Notes under the pieces: generated by a model
What the model saw: the letters and a program-made list of their open reading frames with translations, nothing else
What the model was told of the DNA's origin: nothing
Databases searched by the model: none
In this document: positions 50,320 through 64,000 of the stretch, piece by piece
How the letters are laid out: each line of letters opens with the position of its first letter
Numbering within the stretch: position 1 is the stretch's first letter
Source: Zygnema circumcarinatum SAG 698-1b
Lineage: Eukaryota; Plantae; Zygnematophyceae
DNA: 64,000 nucleotides
NCBI GenBank assembly: GCA_037447605.1
Contig: CM074808.1
Coordinates: 1,674,001-1,738,000 of the forward strand
Reading direction: 5' to 3'
Position numbers and translations under genes: made by a program

Positions 50320-52379
50320 CATTTCGGAACCTCAAAGCTATGGAGAAGCTTTGAAAGGTGAGGCTCTAAAAAGTGGAGGGTGGCCATTAATAGTGAACTA
50401 AGCAGCCTGGAGAAGAATGGAAAGAGGAGATTAGAGGAACTTCCTAAGAGTAGGAAGACTATTGGTTGCAAATGGGTGTTCAAGGTGAAGCGTAAGGCTG
50501 ACGGGAGTGTGGATCGCTTAGAGGCTAAGTTAGTAGCAAAGAGGTATAGCCAAAAAAAGGGGATAGATTACTCTGAGACTTTTGCACTAGTGTGGTAAAG
50601 TTTAACTCCCTTTGTTCACTCATTTTAATTGTAGTAGTTGAGAAGATGCATGTCCATCAACTTGATATTAAGACTGCATTCCTTTATAGGGATCTTAGTA
50701 AAGAGATCTATATGGAGTAACCGAAGGGTACAATAGTAGTAGGAAAGGAGCACCTCGTATGCAAATTGGTAAAGAGCCTTTACGGGCTTAAGCAGACACC
50801 CCGGATTTAATACCAAAAGATTGATGATCATTTGTAAAGGAGAGAATACAAGCGCTTTCAATCAGACTACTCTGCCTACAACAAAGGTACTTGGAAAGAG
50901 CTATTGTATGTGGGCATTTATGTCAATGATTTGATCATTATAAGTTCTTCAATGCAAAGCATTCAAAGTCTGAAAGACTTGATGAAGAAGAACTTTCAAA
51001 TGTTAGACTTAAATGAGGCCCAATATTTATTAGGAATTAGTCTTCAAGTTCTTGAGGGGGACTGTTGGCTATGGGATCAAGTTTGAAGCAAGGAGTAAAA
51101 GTGAGGTATATTGTTATACGAATGCAAATTAGGGAGGCGACGTAGATACAACAAGATCTACCTTTGGATATGCATTCATGAACAACAAAAGAGTGGTGAC
51201 TTGGAGCTCTAAGCTCTAAGATTCAATAGCATTGTCAAAAATTGAAGCGGAGTACATGGCAGCGTGCCATACAGCCAAGGAAGTAGCTTGGTTGCAACAG
51301 TTCTTTGAAAAGTGTGAGTGGCCTCAAACTCCTTCGCAACTGTTGACAAATAACCAGTCCTCAATGACTTTGATGCAAAATCTAGTCTTTTACAAGAGGT
51401 CTAAGCACATCAGGATTGAGTATCATTTTGTCTGTGAGCTTGTGGTTGAAGGAAGAATGGTTGTAGTTTATGTTGGCACAAACAACCAAGTAGTAGACAT
51501 GCTTACAAAAGGGGTCAATGGAGAGACGTTGTGGAAAAACAACATGCTTGTAGGATTGGGGCCTCAAAAGAACTAAGTACCAAGAGGGGGAATGTTAGTG
51601 TATATTAGTTAGTGGTACATAGTTAGTTAGTGTATGTGTTTGTTTAGGAGTCTAAAAAGGCTAGGCAGTAGAACTAGGGTCGAGCTAAGATCTGGCCAGA
51701 GTCCAAAGGTGTGTTGGAGACACTTAAGGCACGAGTCACGGGAGGCCATCAGAACAAGGGTCCGCAACGGATACGAATGGCCGGCTATGTTGAGACAAAG
51801 TACAAAATGGTGCGCAGCCAACAATGTGTGATGTGATAAGCATGGCATGCATCTAAAGATGCATGATGTGACTAATGTGCAACTAAAGACATGTGACGTG
51901 ATAGGCGTGTAGGCATAGGCGTGTGGCAAGACCAACGCTTAGTGTTTGCTAGCAGGGTTGGTAGCCGCCCATGGCTGTTGCTTTGGGTGAAATATAAATT
52001 GAGTGGGAGAACATTGAGACTTAACTTTGGGTGTAGACTGCAAGAAGCAGTAGGTGAAGCTTCTTGAAATGTGGTGGAGCTTCACAGCTTGAGGGTGGTA
52101 GTCATTAAGTGGAGTAGAGGTGCAGGGGGTGACTCTTGCTACGTGCTTGTATTTCCATTTGAATGTTAAGAGTTTTAGGTCATTGTGCTTTTTCTTAATT
52201 TTTTGTTTTTGTGTTTTATTTTTATTCTTTGCCTGGGGTTGTTTTAAACTTTGTGAGTGAGGTCTTGTTCTTCCGCAAAGGTGGCGTCTCCCAGTCTTAG
52301 GCGTAAAGAGAGTCCTAGGCGTAAAGAAATGTCCTCCTCAGAGGCATCCTCTAACAGGTTTAGGGGCTCCGTTTCAACA
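50320..52379 (+). mobile_element. Decayed Ty1/copia retrotransposon (RT-RNase H remnant, PPT, 3' LTR)
   Basis: IGCKWVFKVK, GIDYSETFA, IYVNDL, EAEYMA and KRSKHIRIEYHFV, with stops and frameshifts. PPT AAGAGGGGGAA at 51582-92. LTR from TGTTAG (51593) to TCAACA (52379). Confidence 0.9.
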
Positions 52380-52766
52380 TGGTCTGCCTGCTTTAGTCCT
52401 GCTCAAGTCTTGCTAAGCCTTGCTCAAGCCTACCAAAAGGGGCCGGCGGCTGCAATTCATTTTTAAAAATTTGGCGGGAAAATTTGGTTTTCTGAGCGCG
52501 CCAGTTGGAAACGCCGGCGCCTCTTAGGGTGGGGTTCCATCAGCGTTTTTTCGCCGACGTGGAGGTACATGCATAGTTCCCCAAAAGCAAAATTTCACTA
52601 ACTTGCTGCAACGCGCCGTTTGCCGTCGATTTCGCTTCGCACGCTCAATGTGCGGTCACGATGCAATGACTTAATCAGTTGTCCGATATGGTGCCAATGT
52701 GGCGCCTGCGTGGCGCCTACGTGGCATGCTCGCAAGTTTGGGCTCTGTGCGTCTGTACACCGTAGC

Positions 52767-53460
52767 TGTCACGTCTGAAAAGCTAGCTTTCTCAGCCGTG
52801 CGCGGAATAGCACTAAGTTCTGCACTCAGAGTCCAGCAAGGAGAGTCAGAGAGAGAGAGAGAGAGAGAGAAGGAGAGCTTCAGAGGATGGCGCAGCCCGG
52901 GGCAAGGGTGCAACCGAATGCCGGTACGTTGGTTGGTTGGCGACGGCCAACCTCGCCCCTATACGCTTCCCCCGTTGAACCTCCTACCAGCATGGAGGAT
53001 TGGAAGCAGGGCTGTCCAGTGGCAACCCGCCACGCGTCCATCTCTGACCCGGATGGGTCAGAGGAGTACAACNNNNNNNNNNCCCGTGGTGTCACGAGAA
53101 AATCCGTAATCAAGTCCATACCCACACTATCCCATTTCCGGAAAGGAGGGGTAAGAGGTTGCAGCTGGCCAGGGATCCTGCCAGTGCGTGGTTTGTTTCG
53201 TTGACAAGTTGGACAAGCGAGTACATACGCTTTCACGTCCCTCGTGAGTCCAGGCCACCAAACTCTCGGAGCAGTGCCTCACGGGTTTTGGCATCTCCCA
53301 TGTGACNNNNNNNNNNTTCGCAAGGTTCGATCCCAGGACCCTTCCTGGTCCTAGGTGGTACCCGACGCCTTGACCACTCGGCCCGCGCCCGGGGTGAGAG
53401 TACTAGGACGGAGTGCGCCCTAAGTACACCTCCCGTGGGTGACTGTAGCGTTTCGCTACA
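52767..53460 (-). mobile_element. Ty3/gypsy LTR retrotransposon with both ends present and the interior collapsed into two N gaps; LTR carries a tRNA-like module
   Basis: TG...CA ends with 5-bp TSD GTAGC (52762-66 and 53461-65). Integrase zinc-binding/core piece CPTCQRNK..GQLQPL..WDSVGMDLIT lies between the gaps. The LTR 3' part matches 60360-60660. Confidence 0.85.
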
Positions 53461-54601
53461 GTAGCCCCCGCATGCTATAGCCCTCGCCGTAACCGCAACA
53501 TGTAACTTGTAACTCGAGCGTACACGTAGCCGTAGCCGTAGCTGGTAGCCGCCGCGCTTCGGGCTGTACCAGAGCGGCCCGCGGCCAAGGGAAGCCTCGC
53601 ACGCAACGGCCCATGTTCCACCCTTGCACATAGCCATGTGGTTATCAGGAAACTCATACCAAACGCGTAAGCGTAGGCATTGTTGTGCCTCGGCGTAGCT
53701 TTCCACCTCCTTGCTTTTTTCTTATGTCCTCTGATCCTTTGCGACAGGTTCATCGTAGTTCAATAGCAAAAGTAGCTGAAATAAGAGCAGCAGCAGCAGA
53801 AGCAGAGTAAGGAGCACTAAAAACAGCAGGTGCAAAAAGGGCAGCAGCAGAAAAAGTAGTAACAACCCTGAAAGCAGCAGCAACCCTAAAAGGAAGACCA
53901 TCCCCATTGCTCACCGTTGGACAAATGGATGATTCGCGAACAGTGGAATTTGTGGAGCGAATGTTGCATCTTGCAATAAAACACATACAAAATAACGCAG
54001 CATGTCCACAAAGCCTCTTGCTGAAAGATTCCGGGACTTCAAAGGCACTCCACGAGTAATCTACACAGAAAAACACATAACGTTAACCCTTTCCCCTCCT
54101 CTCAATCTCTTTCACACCCTTTCTTTGACTTCCAGCCAAAAGATCCATGCAGTATGACATATTACCTGCTGTACAATAGCTTCAAGGTCGGGAAGAAATG
54201 GGAAAACCATATTCACAAGCGCTTCATTTGGTTTAAGACAAGAACGCTCCAAAAAATAATCATCGCTTTCCTTTTTGAATCCTGCAAGCACCCTACAGAC
54301 GGGAGGGACAATCAAAGAAAGGTAATTGATTGCAAGGGCTTTATTTGAAGCTTGGCCCCACCTCCTTGCCACCTAGATTTCATCAAACCCACAAGAGTGC
54401 GTGAAGCATTCCCTTGCTGCCGCACCACGGAATATGTGCAAGGTGCCTGAACAACGGAGATCTAAGTGCTCAATGACTTTTTTCATGAACTTTGATTGTG
54501 CTTCACGATACATTTCAACCTTAGTGGAGTCTTTGGACGGAAACAATAAGGTTTTGTACCTGCAAAACAACAAACAAATGTATCAATAAAAACAGTACAT
54601 T

Positions 54602-55071
54602 TGTAGCGAAACGCTATACATGTGTTGTACGGCCTAACATTTATATCCGCGGTTGCCTTTTAATGGTAAAGCACTTAGGTGAGTACCAGGAGGTCCAGAG
54701 TTTGAACCTTGCTGTTGGCAGGTTTGTTACATTGGTATCAGAGCCTAAGGACTGGTATTTGTAATCCACCCCAAAAACACCGTGATCTCTGAGCATGATA
54801 CGGCTTGGCTGACTGGTCCCCAGCCAAACAATGGCCAGAGGGTCTGAACCGTGGCGGGCATGTGTTGAAGGAGCTTGAATGCAGCTCGTGAAAAACCTTG
54901 AGGGTGTGCTCGAGGACGAGCCCGGTTTAGGTGGGGAGGAATATAGCAAAACGCTATAAATGTGTTGTACGGCCTAGTACTTACATCCGCAGTTGCCTTT
55001 TAATGGTAAAGCACTTAGGTGGGTACCAGGAGGTCTTGAGTTTGAACCTTGCTATTGGTAGGTTTGTTACA
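54602..55071 (+). mobile_element. TRIM (470 bp) with tRNA-like LTRs
   Basis: 130-bp LTRs at 54602-54731 and 54942-55071 (~13 differences by eye). PBS TGGTATCAGAGC at 54733, PPT AGGTGGGGAGGAA at 54929-41, 5-bp TSD ACATT on both flanks, no coding capacity. Inserted in an intron of the Crypton-like gene. Confidence 0.95.
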
Positions 55072-55380
55072 ACATTTGTGCAAAAATATAAAACAAAATA
55101 CACAAATAATAGTTGATTGGATAAGTTTAGACTCACCAAAGGTAGTTGCTCCAAAAATCTGGAGGAGGTTCTTCTGATACAATGAACCTGTGGAAGAAAT
55201 ATCGTGATATCCATCCATGACTGCAAAGTTCCGGATCTGAATGTCTAAATGAAGCCCCATATTGGACTGCTCCTCCCGAGTTCTTTTTCCCCCCATGTGA
55301 CACCACACCTAGGACAGTACATTCAGATGGGCCAATAGTTGTTGTAGCCATATCATCAATAAATAGATAAATAAATAAAA

Positions 55381-56902
55381 ACGCCTTCAACAAAGGTTGA
55401 AACATAGCTGGAACAGTGGGCATGGCCTCACCCGCAGTGGGTTGCCACTCCTGATCTTCATCATGAGCATCCTCGGTTGCCGCCATGACTTGCACCATAA
55501 ACAAGATGCTATTCGTTTTCAAGGCCTAGCCAATTTGCATGGCAGAGCATAGAAACGACAAAGACAACTGCGAAGAGGCCAGTCAGGAAGGACTGCCTGG
55601 TTGTAGCGTTATGCGTCTACCCTCACTGCGGAGGACGCAATTAGGGACAACAAAATCCAGCTGGGCACCCATATGCGTCAGCCATTTGCTCCCCAAGATA
55701 AAGTCTGTGCCTGGGGCTAACAACGTCAACAAGCAGTTGACGACCCCGGAGTAAGACTGAATCTTCAATTTCACGCTGACGCTGCCAGAAATTTGGCCCG
55801 TGCGTCCATCCTCGAAAGTTACACTATCGGAATGAGGTTGGACTGCAAACCTTGCAGTCCGGACAAAGGCTGCGCTAACAAAGTTAGCGTCCGCGCCAGT
55901 GTCCTGTAGAATCACTGCTGAGTGCCTGTCGGCTGACCCTTGAAAGGTCATCGAACGATGGGCCAAGTGGAAAATGGACCGTAGCACATTTGGTGCGTGG
56001 GGACGCGCAGTCCGCCACACAAGGGAATGAGGAGACTTCACCAGCGCACTGGTGGGAGCTCCAGACATCCACCTAAGAAGGGAGAAGCCTTTCTTCCACA
56101 ACTTTACCACTTTCCACTCAGTCTGTGGAGAAGCCCTCACTACCACATGTTGTGGGAGCAGGACTCGCAGACTGAGTACATGGTCCTTCGACCGCAGCAA
56201 GCGCAAGGCATCAAATGCACATTGCACTAAGGCATCATTGCCCATGGCATTCAAGATAACAACATGCCATTCGTTTCCAAAGACAACATTCGAAAACGTT
56301 GTTGGAGTCACAGACGTAGAAGGTAGCAATGAATAATCAGCAGGGAATGCATTGCACACAAATAACATGTTCCCACCGAAAATTCCCCCAATCACATTGA
56401 GAATGTCATGTCTCCGTGGAATACAACATTCTACCCTAGTGACGGCAGCCAACGTGCTGCCCCCTCCACTAACAAGCCCACCGGCAGGGACTCCTAAGCT
56501 GCTGGTGGGGAGCCGTTTTCGGCCGTCCCCTTCCCCTTTCTATCCTTCTTGAAAGATGGCCAGTCGTAAGACCTATGCCCCACCTTCCTGCAGCGGAAAC
56601 ACTTGTTTTCCGCTCTCAAAGCCTCCATCTCCNNNNNNNNNNNNNNNNNNNNNNNNNNNNNNNNNNNNNNNNNNNNNNNNNNNNNNNNNNNNNNNNNNNN
56701 NNNNNNNNNNNNNNNNNNNNNNNNNNNNNNNNNNNNNNNCCGTACGGCTATCGAACCTTTGGCGGTTCGATCCGTGGACCTCCTTTTGGTCAACATAGTA
56801 TCCCGGCGACCTTACCCTCTAGGTAGGCGCCAGGACGAGAAGGTATACATAGTATGTACTATGTATGTGCCCCCCAGGGTCTTGCTGTAGCGTTACGCTA
56901 CA
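55381..56902 (-). mobile_element. 3'-truncated Ty3/gypsy element: 5' LTR start, gag zinc knuckle, protease
   Basis: LTR start TGTAGCGTAACGCTACA at 56902, then a gap, knuckle CFRCRKVGH, protease LQDTGADANFVS..DFILGSKWL and pre-RT linker FQPLLKAF, where it breaks off. Confidence 0.85.
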
Positions 56903-57269
56903 CAGTCCCTCGTTTAGGATCAATGAACATCTTGTAGACACAAAAAACTAAAAGACATTTACTTTCAAATTACATTATGTTACAAGGAAGATAAAGCGGG
57001 TGAGACAAAGGTAAGGAGTGGGTGAGGGAGAGCGAGAGAGAGGGAGAGACCGGCAAACAAAAGGAGAAAGAGAGAGAGGGGAAAGAGGGAGGGGAGGGGA
57101 GAGGAAAAGAGGGATAAAAGGAAGAGAGAGGGAGGGAGAGAGGGAGAGAGGGAGGAGGGAGGGGGAGAGGGGGGAGAGAGGGAGGAGGGAGGGGGAGAGC
57201 AAGTAAGGAGGGAGAGAGGGAGAGATCGGGAAGCAAAGGGGGAAAGAGAGAAAGCAGTAAGCAACAAGC

Positions 57270-58028
57270 AAAATGTAGAATGCAAAATGCAGAATGCAGA
57301 ATGTTGAATGCTGAATGCAGAATGCAGAATGCAGAATGTAGAATGGAGAATTCAAAATGCAAAATGCAGAATGCGGAATGGAGAATGCAGAATGCAGAAA
57401 GCAGAATGCAGAAAGCAGAAAGTAGAAAGCAAAAAGATAACTTGCCTAAGTCATCTTTCATCGGTAGAGCGGGCCATCATCTCCACCATATACTTGACTT
57501 GCAAGTTTTCACTCACTTTTACACCCAAAGATACATGATCATGTGTTTATAAAATCAATAGTTTTTTGGGCATGTTGCAATGCAAAAATACTATTAGACA
57601 AAGTGCTTGGGGTTAAAGGACTTGCATTCATAGTGCCATTGTCTAATCTCCAAAATAAAAATACTGCACTCTTTCTGAATGTGGAACTGGCCTCCAACCC
57701 TCTGATTCACACTTAGCAACAAATTGCTTTATTACGGGGCGGTATGATGCCTTCGTAGATTTTGGGCGTAATCTCTCTACCCCAGAAACTAATAAGTGGC
57801 TTTGAGCTGTAGTTGCCCTGCACAAAAACAGAAGGAAAACCCTTAATTCCATAATTCTTCAAAAAGAGTGACATAAAATGTACATACTTTGAAAGAAAAG
57901 TAGAAAGCAGAAAGCCAAAAGCAAAAAGCAGAAAGAAGAAAGTAGAAAGCAGAAAGTAGAAAGCAGAAAGCAGAAAGCAAAAAGCAAAAAGCAAAAAGCA
58001 AAAAGCAGAAAGCAAAAAGCAAAAAGCA
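57270..58028. repeat. Two heptamer arrays, (AATGCAG)n at ~57270-57432 and (AAAGCAG/AAAAGCA)n at ~57893-58028, in putative introns of the Crypton-like gene
   Basis: Direct observation; a GA-rich tract precedes them at 57020-57250. Confidence 0.85.
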
Positions 58029-58394
58029 TACCTTGGCTTTATAGGCATGTTGCGTCTTTGTTCCTCTTCATTTTCAATTGTCGTTTCTGCTGCAAATATT
58101 GTCCTTTTAAGCTCTTCATCTCCTATAATACATCCATTCTTCATCACTAGATAAGAGGGATCATCAAATACGCTCCACTCTTCGACTTCTGGACTCAACC
58201 CTAGATGATGAGGATAGAGATGAGGAATTCTTGGATCCATTTCGGCAATAGAAGAAAGAGGTAAGTAAACCACGCTGCATAAATGGATGGATAGAAAAAA
58301 AGATGGATAAAGGCGTACCTGCAGCACATGCGGTGGTAATGCGTAAGGGGGGGGGGGGGGGGGGGGGGGNNNNNNNNNNGAATATGGTACACGG

Positions 58395-59093
58395 CAATTC
58401 AGTGTAGGCAAAAGTGGAATAACTCATTACAAGCATTCAAGAAGATTCTGGCGTATGAAAATCATATCCCCAGTGGGAAGTTAGATTACTGGAACCAAAG
58501 TGGAGAGGACAGGAGAATACGATTTACCGGCACGTTTTTCCAAAAACATTTACAATAAGTTTCACGAAGCAACAGCAGGCAATCAGAGTGTGTGCCCAAC
58601 GATTGTTGCTAATGCATTTGAAGAAACGATGGAGCGTTAGCGTGCTTTAGCCAATGTGCCAGTATCACCACCACCAGTGACTCGGCGTGCTTCAGCCAAT
58701 GTGTCGATATCACCACCACCAGTGACTCAGCGTGCTTCAGCCAATGTGCCGGTATCACCACCACCAGTGACTCAGCGTGCTTCAGCCAATGTGCCGGTAT
58801 CACCACTACCAGTGACTCAACGTGCTTCAGCCAATGTGCCATTATCGCCACCACCAATGACTGCGATGCACTCCACAGCTAAGTTGAAGCGACGAGCGGA
58901 AGCAGTGGCCGATGGAATATCAAAAAAGTGGAAAGAGGAGTCATGCGAGTGGAGGGAAAGTTTGGCAAAAGATGACGAGAAATTCATGGGATACATGTCA
59001 GGCTTAATGGAAGAAAACTGGCGTAGGCAAGATGCGGGAAGAAAAGAAATTCTAGGTGCAATGAATATGTTTTTTGAAAAGTTTCAAAAGTAA
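58395..59093 (+). pseudogene. Myb/SANT (trihelix-like) DNA-binding protein of a PIF/Harbinger element, frameshifted, with an internal 45-bp tandem repeat
   Basis: IQCRQKWNNSLQAFKKI..DYW..(frameshift)..LPARF; PVSPPPVTQRASANV repeated ~5 times (58643-58860); convergent with the transposase. Confidence 0.7.
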
Positions 59094-59465: not shown

Positions 59466-60359
59466 TCAACGCTCTAGAGCGGGGCCGTACAATCTAAACA
59501 AATATGCAGCATGTTTCCTCCGTAATACTACCCCATCTACATCCTCATCATCATCATCCATAAGTACACCCCCTCTATCATTTCCTTTATCAATGTTTCC
59601 ACCATCCTCATCTTCATCAAATTCTTCCACACTTTCATGATGAAGCATGAAGTTATGTAAAATACATACTGTAAGTGTTTGAGGGTTAACCATCTGAACT
59701 TCACTGTCTAAAATACGCCATCTTCTTTTCAAAATTCCATACAACCTTTCTACACACATTCGAGCTCTACCATGATAGAAGTTGAATGATTGTTCCGGTT
59801 CTCCAATGAGACTGGCGGCAAAAGGCCTTATGAGACTCTTTCGTAGTGGATAACCTGCATCAGCAATGATGTATGGTGTGAAGTTGAAGCCATCCACTTC
59901 CTTAGGGCTCCCTTGCAAGCATCCTCCATAAGTGATCCTTCTGCCAATGGCTGAGTTTGCAAAGACTCGAGCATCATGGACAGAACCTAGCCATCCAATG
60001 TTGGCATCTAAGATCCTTGTGTCAGGACCCACCACTGTCAGCATAATCATACTATTATCTATGGTTTCTATCATACCAGTCTTTATTACGTAATCCTGGC
60101 CCTAACTTAATGTTCATATGGGTTGCATCAATAGCTCTGTAACAATTTACAAACCCCCATCGCTCCTCAAATTCTCTTGCCACGGTACTAAGGACTTCAT
60201 CACTTTGGCCAAGCCACAAATGTAGGAGTCAAAATAGACCTTACAGCTTTACAAAAGCATTTTGTCTTACGCCATACAATCAATGCACTCACTCCAAATA
60301 GTGTCCCTGTGACATGTGAAGAGCCCCTGTGGGCTAACCTATGTAGACACATCTCTACC
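59466..60359 (-). mobile_element. PIF/Harbinger (HARBI1-like) transposase, decayed, 5' part cut off by a gypsy insertion
   Basis: LHRLAH..FGVS, GWLGSVHDARVF, IIADAGYP, FNFYHGRARMCVERLYGILKRRWRIL and CILHNF. Confidence 0.9.
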
Positions 60360-61419
60360 TGTAACGGCTGAAATCTAACTCCTTCAGCCTGCGCGGAATA
60401 ACACACCAGCACTCAGAGTTCAGCGAGAGGGCGAGAGCAAGAGCGAGAGAGAGAGCTTCAGAGAGTGGCGCAGCCCTGGTCAGGGGTGCAACCGAATGCC
60501 GGTACGTTGGTTGGGTGACGACAGTCACCCACGCCCCTTTACGCTTCCCCCGTCGAACCTCCTACCAGCATGGAGGATTGGAAGCAGGGCCGTCCAATGG
60601 CAGACTGCCACGTGTCCCTCTCTGACCCGAATGGGTCAGAGGTGTACAACGTACGAACGCTCACCANNNNNNNNNNAAAGGTCCGATGAAGCGGGGCCAC
60701 AGCTTACGTGTTCCGCCATAAGCTTTGAGTCTCAAGTTCGCCGTACTTAGCAACACCTCATCGCCTTCGTTGAAGGTGAGTTGGGTACGGTGACGGTCAG
60801 CATAGGCCTTTTGTCGCGACTGGGCCGCTAGCAGGGTCTGTCGTGCCCTCTGCAGCGCCTCAGACATTAGTTGGACAAAAGATCTGACTGCGGGAGGTTG
60901 AGTCCCATCAGTCCCTCTCAGCTTCCAAGGATCGGGGTTTCTGTGGACGCCCATGTTCCACGGATCAGGGGACTGATCCCTTGGTTGCAGGGGATTTAGG
61001 GGATGCTGACCAAAATTCAGGAAGAAAGGGGTGGTACCAATGGACTCCTGGAAAGCATTATTGATGGCATACTCAGCCACTGGGAGCAGTTCGTCCCACC
61101 CATCCGGGTAGGTCCCATAATGCCGAGGTAATCCTCCAGATCCCGCTCACCCGCTCCGCCTCCCCGCCATCAGTTTGGCGGGTGGAAAGTCGTACTCAAC
61201 GCTTCCTCGCTTTTCTTGGTCCCAACGATTTGAGCACTCGGCCCAAAAATGGCCGTGAATCGCGGGATCACTTCGCCGCATACTTGGATCAAGACCATGC
61301 TGGCTCCACACTTTGTCAACATACAACCGTGCAATCTCGTCGGCCCCAGCGGTCTTAGTAGTTGGTGCAAAATGCACCATCTTGCTGAGTCGATCGACAA
61401 AGACGAGGATGGAGTCATG
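60360..61419 (-). mobile_element. Ty3/gypsy integrase and 3' LTR end, same family as 52767-53460
   Basis: HDSILVFVDRLSKMVHF, AEYAINNA..TPFFLNFGQHP, RQKAYAD, GDEVLL and KLWPRFIGP. The LTR end CGTTACA at 60360 sits inside the Harbinger transposase. Confidence 0.88.
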
Positions 61420-64000
61420 TGTTGAAGCAGGGGTCTGCTCCCCACTTCCGGCGCCACCTCGGGTGTCGCCCTCCATTGGAACTTGAGTTCCCACGGATGA
61501 AGACATTCAAACACTCAAAGCTCTATCTTACTTCACTCATCGCCCATAACAACAGAATGAAGCTACAAGACAAGCACAGCGGAAATCACAATGAGAGAGT
61601 GTTAGGAGAAAGCTCACGGCTCTAAAACTCCTTATAATAAAACTGTCTTCCCACAATGAAGTTCTCCCACTACTTCAAGGTCCCTCTTACTCACCACCTC
61701 ACCTACAAGTGTAGGCAAAATTTAGCAAAGACGAAAGGTGTCTCCGGTAAGACCCGGTGACTATGACAGAGTAGTGTAGGTGGATTACTTCCATAAGTAA
61801 AACTACGACTATAATATGGCTATCCTCGCGACGCGGACATTGACATGTCACGCCGTCCGCCATTGCAAAAACTACGTGACCGAAGTCCGGAGTGGGCGCA
61901 TCAAATAGCGCATCAGCTAGCTGCCTCAGAAAACCTACGGCGGCGCCGCACCTAGTTCTACGGATCGCATATCCGTCTGCATGCTGCTGCTTCGCCAGCC
62001 GCCTTCGCCACACATCTCGCCGACATCAACTCGCTGACCTACATCGCGAAGTGGTCCACGTATGCATTCCTAAGCCACACCAAATACCTTATGTCAAGCT
62101 CACGCCAGAACTTTATGCCTCACAAGCTACTGTCATGCATTAATCGAGTCGCCAAGGTCTCAGATGCTAATCATGTCACACACTAATCAAAGTTGCGTGA
62201 TTCAGACTCCACTTACTTGTGTCACCGCCACACTAATCAGCTACCAGACTCCTCACAAGACTACAAGACTCACCAAAGTCAGAGCAATCGGCTATCACTA
62301 AATCTAAGAGCACTACGCTTCTTAGCAGATTCATGTTCTACAAACTGAGTACTACAACAAGTTAGTGTGTGCCATACAATGTCTAACTATCATACACTAA
62401 CACTAAATAACTCTTGGGACTCGCCTCATGGGCCCCAGCCCAATCAACCTGCCGCTCACTAGTAGTGTCTCCCCCTCACACCTTTAGTCAACATGTTCGC
62501 GAGCCTGCTCTTTTGTTCCTACAAACTTCACCACTATCATCCCTTCCTCTACCAACTCTCGCACATAATGATATTGCACCCTAATGTGTTTGGTTCTTTT
62601 ATGGAACACAGGGTTTTCCATAAGAGCTATAGATGACTGGTTGTCCGTGAAAAGAGTCAATGGTAAGCCAGGGTCGTGCTTTACATTCTACCTCAAAGAA
62701 ATGTTGGAACCACATCCCTCCTTCACAAGGCGGGCACGCCCCATGTATTCTCCTTCGGTGGCTCTACGCTTACCGTAATCTTGTAACTGAAAGCCCATGA
62801 GATCGCCCGCTCAGAACACAAATCCTGACGCCGCATCGCGTGACGCGTCCACGCCACCTCCTCAATCTCGGAAGTCGGTGTATCCCATCGACTCAGTCGC
62901 CCCTCTCAAACCCGAGGTCAGAATCCGTCCCTTTCATCAATCTCAAGATCCGCCACCGCCTCCCAGCCGTCAAGACCGATTCTCCATGAACCGACTTGCT
63001 GAGCTCACGGCTTTCGCCAAGTCAGGACGAGTACCTATCATCAGATACATTAAACTCCCGGATGTCGATTCAGACGCACTGCACATTCTCTCGTATCTCC
63101 GCGATCTCTGCCGCAGTATCATATTTCCGACAATCGCTGCTCCGACATCTCCATCAACTCGAGCAAGGACGCACTCTCCATTTTTGAACCTGGCAGTACA
63201 TCTGCGGCGCATTTCTTCCTCGAATATTAAAGAAAGAAGCTGCCGCCCTCGCCTCTTCAACTGCATTCCTAGGAGATACTGTGCCTCCCCTAGATCCGAC
63301 ATTTTGAAGTTAGCTTCCAAAAGCTGCTTCAAATCATTGATTCTCTCCAATGAGAGGCTCACCATTATGAGGTCGTCCACGTAGATCCCAACGTACATGA
63401 GATCTGCCTCTTCCCCTTGTCGGTAGACGGAATGATCCGTCTCAAATCGCGCAAATCCGTTACTCCTCAGGAGGTCATCAATTTTCGTACCAAATCCTGG
63501 GCACCTGTTTCAGTCCATACAATTTTTTTACAAGACGACAAACGATGTTTCTTCGCCTCGACAATCCTTTCCTTCTGCCGTACTTACGATCTCTCGAGAT
63601 CTCCGCATAAAACGCTGTCTTGATATCGAAGTTGATGTAATGGGTATCCCTCGCCGCCGCAATCGCATATTAGGGGCACCTGAGGAGTTGAACTACTCAC
63701 GGGGCGAAGGTCTCCGTAGCTCCATTCCACGCTTCTGGTTGAAGCCCTTCACACTGTGACGCTGCTTTGTAACGGTCGTGACGCTTTCCCGCCCGCCGCC
63801 GCCTTGAACACCCACTTGCATCCAATGGCCCGCTTTCCCCTCGCCGCAGCTCCTCAAGTCGCCACGCGGCCGCTTCTCCAGCAACTGTCCCACTCGCTGC
63901 CGATCGCCGCCGCTTTTCTTACTTTCTCCATCACCCCGCTGCAGGCCTCCTCAAAGGCTTGCGTTCCTGATCATAAACAGGCAGCCTCCCTTCACAGGTC
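61420..64000 (-). mobile_element. Ty1/copia retrotransposon (RT-RNase H remnant and ~980-bp 3' LTR) inserted in the gypsy integrase; continues off-window
   Basis: YVGIYVDDL, KMSDLGEAQYLLG, GSLMYLMIGTRPDL and HKRTKHI. LTR from TGTTAGTGTAT (62402) to TTCAACA (61420), with ends resembling the 51593-52379 LTR. Confidence 0.88.

Follow-up and report, generated by a model that had tools for sequence, protein, structure and literature searches.

In a 64-kb stretch of the Zygnema circumcarinatum SAG 698-1b genome (positions 1,674,001 to 1,738,000 of contig CM074808.1; the whole stretch is called the window here, and its own numbering is used throughout), a complete terminal-repeat retrotransposon in miniature (TRIM) of the Helenus type lies close to two Ty3/gypsy-type elements, which we call A and B, and the long terminal repeats (LTRs) of all three begin in the same way. 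The explanation that best fits the data, and to which we give a probability of about 60%, is that the LTRs of the TRIM and of a chromovirus-like Ty3/gypsy clade are of common descent, with the TRIM using the enzymes of that clade in trans. The features of the three elements are as follows.

54602-55071, plus strand: TRIM of the Helenus type, complete, 470 bp, with two LTRs, primer-binding site (PBS), polypurine tract (PPT) and target-site duplication (TSD)
54602-54731, plus strand: TRIM, 5′ LTR, 130 nt
54942-55071, plus strand: TRIM, 3′ LTR, 130 nt
54733-54745, plus strand: TRIM, PBS, TGGTATCAGAGCC, one spacer base after the 5′ LTR
54929-54941, plus strand: TRIM, PPT, AGGTGGGGAGGAA
54597-54601 and 55072-55076: TRIM, TSD ACATT, on both flanks
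52767-53460, minus strand: element A, Ty3/gypsy type, in three pieces split by two 10-N gaps
53317-53460, minus strand: element A, LTR head (5′ part), cut off by the gap at 53307-53316
53444-53460, minus strand: element A, terminal hairpin, a motif match
53367-53384, minus strand: element A, D-arm-like stretch
53320-53340, minus strand: element A, B-block, a motif match
53083-53306, minus strand: element A, integrase fragment (zinc-binding H2C2, then the beginning of the catalytic core), with a 10-N gap on each side
52767-53072, minus strand: element A, LTR tail (3′ part), ending in ...GACGTGACA at 52767
52762-52766 and 53461-53465: element A, TSD GTAGC
56740-56902, minus strand: element B, LTR head with hairpin, D-arm-like stretch and B-block
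56886-56902, minus strand: element B, hairpin
56809-56824, minus strand: element B, D-arm-like stretch
56764-56780, minus strand: element B, B-block
Between the LTR head and the gag/protease region of element B: a gap of 107 N
55583-56632, minus strand: element B, C-terminus of gag (CCHC) and aspartic protease, with a frameshift between them and no reverse transcriptase (RT) after them

Four LTR copies, belonging to these three elements, begin with TGTAGCG-NNN-CGCTA(C/T)A, so that each LTR starts with a 17-nt palindrome. Motif counts, shuffles, nhmmer and similarity searches all covered the whole window. In it, the hairpin TGTAGCGNNNCGCTAYA with at most two mismatches matches only at 53444-53460, 54602-54618, 54942-54958 and 56886-56902, which are the four LTR starts; 0.27 matches are expected by chance, and the eight strand-matches were reached in 0 of 100 shuffles. 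An earlier reading made from the letters alone (the sequence-only reading) had claimed a common hairpin at three LTR starts, and these four copies from three elements bear it out. The B-block GGTCCNGRGWTYGAACC is likewise confined to the four LTRs, at 53324-53340 (-), 54692-54708 (+), 55032-55048 (+) and 56764-56780 (-), with 0.10 matches expected.

Structural likeness of the LTR heads extends beyond these two motifs. A collinear block, ACCAGGA-GGTCC-G-G-T-GAACC, is common to the four copies, and the invariant columns of their four-way alignment lie almost all in the hairpin, in a GGT-A-G stretch and in the GGTCC...GAACC..GC block. With nhmmer, the LTR head of A finds that of B at E=2.7e-5 (reciprocally, B finds A at 9.5e-4), and a profile of the two TRIM LTRs matches A over positions 1-111 with E=0.005. 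The B-block, aligned locally, reaches a z of about 8. The further claim that the TRIM LTR is collinear with the gypsy LTR is thus upheld, both by the ordered blocks in the alignments and by the profile match. Identity between TRIM and gypsy LTRs is about 55-60% over 110-140 nt, and the likeness of the TRIM to A is limited to the first ~140 nt of the far longer A LTR. Both LTR types have the same 5′ terminus, a similar 3′ terminus, GT(T/G)ACA, and a 5-bp TSD in common. Judged by their sequence, the TRIM and the gypsy-type elements have homologous LTR heads, whose similarity is genuine yet old and distant.

The TRIM has the architecture of Helenus (TRIMp3), namely two short LTRs (91% identical to each other), a PBS, a PPT, a length below 1 kb and no open reading frame (ORF), and the ACATT found on both sides agrees with the 5-bp TSD of plant and fungal Helenus. 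A pattern derived from Helenus-1_SMo, consisting of the D-arm half GGTAGAGCAC, 13 free positions and AGGAGGTCC, matches both TRIM LTRs and nothing else, with 1-2 mismatches and 0 matches expected. Given this in-register match, we assign the TRIM to the Helenus type. For its internal sequence, no similar stretch was found elsewhere in the window.

Evidence on gaps and junctions comes from contigs assembled from public runs (labels X1, X5, X9 and X21), which we compared with the window. For element A, a contig of 532 nt (X9 contig 23; about 91% identical to the flanks) joins 52761 directly to 53461, with 5 letters that fit either side. This contig is an empty-site paralog in which one GTAGC is kept, and it establishes 52767-53460 as a single insertion with the TSD GTAGC; the two termini of element A are consequently its hairpin end and its ...GTGACA end. 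A second contig, of 526 nt (X5 contig 16), covers 52881-53072 without mismatch; 53320-53340 is on it as well, no more than 280 letters away, so that head and tail are linked into one LTR of about 450-730 nt. Pfam detects Integrase_H2C2 at 53083-53278 (-) with E=4e-11.

All three N gaps are discontinuous, in that contigs from public runs go on into other sequence at 53072, 53306, 53317 and 56632. Reading frames across the gaps are therefore meaningless, and each element was collapsed in the assembly. Past 53317, public contigs carry at least 145-169 letters of further LTR sequence, and the loose end at 53306 implies that the upstream coding sequence of the integrase is missing from the assembly. 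Contigs with the LTR and the integrase of A are found in RNA-like runs, and the family of element A appears to be transcribed.

Further along the window lies another copy of the A type, in a decayed state, which we call element C.

60360-61425, minus strand: element C, decayed, 5′-truncated
60679-61425, minus strand: element C, integrase core and C-terminal region
60667-60676: element C, gap of 10 N
60360-60666, minus strand: element C, LTR tail (3′ part)

The LTR tail of A is 82-88% identical to 60360-60650 of element C; both tails end in ...GT(G/T)ACA, and beyond this point the flanks diverge. The integrase piece of C matches integrase C-termini of the chromovirus type (SH3_Tf2-1 plus Chromo), with 38-51% identity and E-values as low as 1e-28. 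An LTR of the A type is tied to integrase-bearing elements at two loci, A and C. The sequence-only reading had tied the LTR at 53460 to an integrase-bearing element; the GTAGC empty-site contig, the integrase between the LTR parts and element C speak for this tie, but every link in it crosses an N gap. On balance, we consider it likely that a gypsy-type element with a module-bearing LTR exists here.

In element B, Pfam recognizes an RVP_2 protease within 55586-56452 (-), with E=8e-7, and a zf-CCHC knuckle at about 56600 (-), and other copies run on past 56632 in an open gag frame. Taken together with Integrase_H2C2 of A, these domains stand on the correct strand and in the correct order relative to the LTR pieces; RT and RNase H are absent, and N gaps occur at every junction. 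A search with the gag/protease region of B against proteins of similar length gave no match, and the nearest public protein, among 1.8 billion representatives, is 35% identical. Both hairpin and block were absent from six loci of public relatives of the gag/protease and integrase proteins, and two metagenome pattern scans returned nothing, or chance bacterial matches. As a candidate TSD of B, the 5-mer CAGTC at 55581 and 56903 was rejected, since the left end starts with letters other than TG.

We note that the 10-mer TGTAGCGTTA, which equals the plus-strand reading of the start of B's LTR hairpin, is present at 55603-55612 (+) inside the protease ORF of B, near the point where the element breaks off; with about 0.1 copies expected per window, it may be there by chance. 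Single X1 contigs join the LTR start of A to that of B (53460/56884) with one letter between them, and the LTR of A to the start of the TRIM (53409/54602). These junctions may stem from copies that are nested, or placed head to head, at other sites of the genome.

As for the nature of the shared block, its likeness to a tRNA is at motif level only. Rfam, searched with the region and with single LTRs, gave no tRNA match, with an E-value multiplied by 4227 families, at which a weak likeness would escape. ARAGORN called no tRNA at default settings; a 'tRNA-His' call in the TRIM at a 70% threshold was discarded as noise, since at relaxed thresholds the program also makes calls in 20-58% of shuffles and of random chunks of the window. 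A tRNA covariance model built for this analysis from 27 bacterial tRNAs and run without filters had no LTR among its 13 window matches at E<=10, and a sequence-only hidden Markov model (HMM) of the same alignment had none among its window matches at E<=100. With no significant score from Rfam, ARAGORN, covariance model or HMM, the description of the gypsy LTR as tRNA-like is not supported.

Applied to the TRIM LTR alone, the covariance model gives 54646-54720 an alignment that begins in the acceptor stem and takes in the complete tRNA down to its 3′ end; the spacing in this register is canonical for a tRNA (G19-to-T54 = 35), but the score is no more than 5.3 bits. Box B of the present copy reads GTTTG, and most genomic copies read GTTCG, with a C at 54703 that restores TTCGAA. 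In the gypsy LTRs, what the same model recovers is limited to a fragment resembling a D arm (1.2 and 3.1 bits) and one resembling a T loop. The module is 8-9 nt longer in spacing there than in the TRIM, and in A a duplication of 10 nt that the TRIM lacks accounts for the extra spacing. Read in sense orientation, the gypsy LTRs have an A at the position where tRNAs have T54; the canonical GGTTCGATCC in these LTRs is on the antisense strand. A class II (Ser/Leu) reading of the D-arm-like stretch of A was also tried and set aside: its spacing fits, but the duplication explains this equally well.

Under common descent, both LTR types would have inherited the 17-nt palindromic terminus, the GT(T/G)ACA end, the 5-bp TSD and a collinear, decayed, tRNA-derived block within the first ~145 nt. 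The TRIM would have been integrated, and probably also reverse-transcribed, in trans by the integrase and RT of a member of the gypsy clade, whose enzymes would recognize the termini common to TRIM and gypsy elements; the common termini and the 5-bp length of the TSD speak for such a use in trans. The high-copy family A would be a distant relative of this helper rather than the demonstrated helper. The block is better kept in the TRIM; in the gypsy elements, given its extra nucleotides and its remote position far upstream in a long U3, it is most likely a vestige or serves another role in cis, as a conserved stem-loop with a B-box-like arm. That the gypsy block works as an RNA polymerase III (Pol III) promoter is unlikely.

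Several observations weigh against this account. Compared with B alone, the TRIM gives no significant nhmmer match, and a tRNA origin is without statistical support for the gypsy LTRs. No uninterrupted read or contig joins the module-bearing LTR head to gag-pol, the links being N gaps or short contigs. The PBS and PPT of the gypsy elements lie in gaps, so that they cannot be compared with those of the TRIM. In element B, the LTR head is at base depth and gag/protease is about 10x deeper; the claim that the LTR at 56902 precedes gag and protease thus stands as regards order and strand, but the gap hides the sequence in between and the tenfold difference in depth speaks against continuity.

Established pairs of a TRIM and an autonomous element set a further standard. 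In such pairs, the LTRs are alike in size and 79-98% identical, and the two members often have internal sequence in common (Gao et al., 10.1101/010850), examples being OsajRetroS10/OsajLTRA10 and the Ty3-gypsy element SmoLTRA4 of Selaginella (10.1101/010850). Similarly to those pairs, for which an origin as deletion derivatives has been proposed (10.1101/010850), a miniature and a coding LTR element share LTR sequence here. In contrast to them, identity is about 55-60%, the LTR sizes are far apart (130 nt and about 450-730 nt) and the internal parts show no similarity, which also counts against a direct partnership. With identity and size outside the range of known pairs, family A counts as related to the LTR of the TRIM, not as a demonstrated partner. 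Of the proposal that the gypsy family mobilizes the TRIM or is its ancestor, the homology of the LTRs remains, whereas A has the standing of a relative only. Homology itself is evident at the present, gap-broken locus.

In the gypsy LTRs, the block could instead be a stem-loop cis-element, ATCGAACC...GGTTCGAT, without tRNA ancestry, whose palindromic TTCGAA core only resembles a B box. In fact, the B-block ATCGAACC of element B pairs with a downstream inverted copy, GGTTCGAT, in a stem-loop at 56744-56775 (-) with a fold z=-3.8. In element A, the letters beyond the gap at 53317, taken from a public contig, supply the same inverted copy for 53317-53340, and the TRIM has a weaker version at 54701-54727 (+) that ends at the 3′ terminus of the LTR. 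The self-complementarity of GGTTCGAACC and the short fragments to which the tRNA models are limited agree with such an element. However, D-arm-like stretches lie upstream in A and B in the right order and on the right strand, AGGAGGTCC directly before the T-loop-like motif is common to the clearly tRNA-like Helenus-1_SMo, and the TRIM aligns to the tRNA model over its full length. We consider an origin outside tRNA unlikely. We also note that A and B agree in the outer stem of this structure and differ in its inner part.

The block's closer likeness to a tRNA in the TRIM implies either a stronger constraint in the TRIM, with the gypsy copy a vestige, or that the gypsy elements took their LTR head from the TRIM. 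In the latter case, a Helenus-type TRIM would have been the source of both terminus and module, and gypsy lineages would have acquired them through a template switch between RNAs packaged together. The canonical spacing of 35, the end-to-end covariance alignment and the in-register Helenus-1_SMo match all place the TRIM module nearer to a tRNA, the additional 8-9 nt and decayed arms of A and B point the same way, and a likeness that stops after the first ~140 nt, although the LTR is much longer, is what such a capture would leave. Yet the heads of A and B are themselves diverged (E=2.7e-5 only), so that only an old capture, or more than one, would do, and equal decay from a common ancestor combined with stronger constraint in the TRIM fits the same data. 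We hold this direction of transfer to be improbable.

Quite improbable, too, is an assembly artefact in which the module-bearing LTR pieces are solo LTRs or parts of long-LTR non-autonomous elements, with integrase and gag/protease mis-scaffolded beside them. An N gap is crossed by every link, the 244 positions between the LTR parts of A (N10 + 224 nt + N10) come close to the at most 280 nt of the X5 contig, and the unequal depth of B's LTR head and gag/protease would be accounted for. However, a coding piece stands on the right strand and in the right order relative to an LTR piece at three places (A, B and C), C independently has an integrase followed by an A-type LTR tail, and the two ends of A bound a single insertion.

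We regard it as highly doubtful that an internal Pol III promoter, or a TFIIIC site, is at work in the TRIM and gypsy LTRs, where it would drive the genomic RNA of the TRIM and give the gypsy elements insulation or escape from silencing. The appeal of this reading lies in the B-block being the best-kept internal stretch across three diverged LTR lineages, in the sole perfect GGTTCGANNCC of the window sitting in A's LTR, in the TTCGAA restored by the C at 54703 in most genomic TRIM copies, and in the conservation from which a promoter has been argued for Helenus (Kojima 2024, PMC10886601). However, the perfect B box GGTTCGANNCC is antisense in A, and at least one such match occurs in 19 of 100 shuffles; one-mismatch matches to the A-box consensus are at chance level (29 in the window, 25.5 expected from shuffles). 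A TTTT at positions 57-60 of both TRIM LTRs falls within the A-box-like stretch, downstream of any possible Pol III start, and a Pol III transcript begun upstream would therefore meet a terminator at once.

The gypsy modules, with their non-canonical spacing and an A for T54 on the sense strand, are scored by no tRNA model, the block has another reason for its conservation as one arm of a hairpin, and a gypsy RNA of 5-8 kb cannot be a Pol III product (PMC10886601). The transcript evidence consists of assembled contigs of poly(A)-type runs, which cannot show transcript starts; the RNA contigs that bear the TRIM have varied flanks, as read-through transcripts would give. The arrangement of a type-2 Pol III promoter (A and B box on one strand, 30-60 nt apart, no early run of T4 or longer) is not present, and the internal promoter proposed in the sequence-only reading is unsupported, given the chance-level A box, the antisense B box in A and the TTTT in the TRIM. 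A long shot, likewise, is the idea that the autonomous chromovirus-like clade keeps a tRNA-derived, TFIIIC-binding LTR module which the Helenus TRIM inherited as a Pol III promoter. If true, it would make this the first autonomous/non-autonomous pair with a common small-RNA-gene module, contrary to the expectation for TRIMp3.

The TRIM sits in an intron of a host gene.

54558-55134, minus strand: host intron holding the TRIM, with GT..AG ends and a spliced joint 54557->55135 in the RNA-like runs X5 and X21

This gene, spliced and expressed, surrounds the TRIM and element B at 53911-58240 (-), and its splice joints in RNA-like runs also include 54058->54164 and 56931 -> about 57446. The exon at 55136-55522 has a weak NDC10_II match (E=1e-4). 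The flanks of the gene are multi-copy, with paralogous contigs about 8x deeper. Microsatellites with 7-bp units, (AGAATGC)n and (AGAAAGC)n, occupy 57240-57440 and 57890-58030 in a host intron, as do purine-rich GA/GGGA tracts at 57010-57240, and a further gap, at 58370, is directly preceded by a G run.

Other neighbours include six tandem 45-bp units at 58594-58908 (+), which encode the proline-rich peptide repeat PPPVTQRASANVPVS within a 145-aa ORF that has no Pfam match. The ORF at 59469-60074 (-) is a PIF/Harbinger-type transposase fragment (DDE_Tnp_4 / Plant_tran domain, E=4e-20). Copia-type pol fragments, with RT/RNase H motifs such as YVDDL, lie at 50380-51576 (+) and 62490-64000 (-), the latter adjoining the 5′-truncated element C.

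Of known systems, Helenus (TRIMp3) is described as comprising TRIMs 311-1263 bp in length that have a PBS, a PPT, a 5-bp TSD and two short LTRs with a decayed tRNA-like core (Kojima 2024, PMC10886601); the tRNA-derived LTR is recognized by a box A (TRGCY...YGG) and a box B (GGTTC) (PMC10886601). Its plant member, Helenus-1_SMo of Selaginella moellendorffii, has its LTR in the supplement of PMC10886601. This LTR has GGTA(G/A)AGCAC, 13 nt and AGGAGGTCC in register with the present TRIM, whereas outside this core there is no similarity and the termini differ, and the present TRIM copy has a degenerate A box that contains TTTT. An insertion of a short interspersed nuclear element (SINE) was proposed as the origin of Helenus, and its autonomous partners were expected to have no common LTR sequence (PMC10886601). 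Contrary to this expectation, the gypsy-type LTRs described here share both terminus and block with the TRIM, and neither of the two histories considered above for the block matches an origin by SINE insertion.

Cassandra, too, carries a segment from a small-RNA gene within TRIM LTRs, but that segment is 5S and not tRNA; its 5S-derived Pol III promoter and its terminator are conserved, transcripts have been shown and it has no known autonomous partner (as summarized in PMC10886601). With chromoviruses, the gypsy-type elements share the RVP_2 protease, the H2C2 integrase and an integrase C-terminus whose nearest public relatives carry SH3_Tf2-1 plus Chromo. Unlike chromoviruses, they have no chromodomain or RT visible in the window (these being hidden by gaps or truncation, with the gap at 60667-60676 covering the place of the chromodomain), and the nearest public proteins are 35-51% identical.

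Among TRIMs whose LTRs derive from small RNAs (Cassandra, Helenus, Ajax), none has a known autonomous partner, and a search of the available literature found no report of a TRIM and a coding gypsy element paired in this way. The link of a gypsy clade to a Helenus-type TRIM is the newer part of these results, and it is only partly established. A coding gypsy clade with a Helenus-homologous LTR head would put the questions of where such TRIMs originate and what moves them on a concrete footing, and with it one could examine whether the tRNA-like block serves as a promoter or is simply left over.

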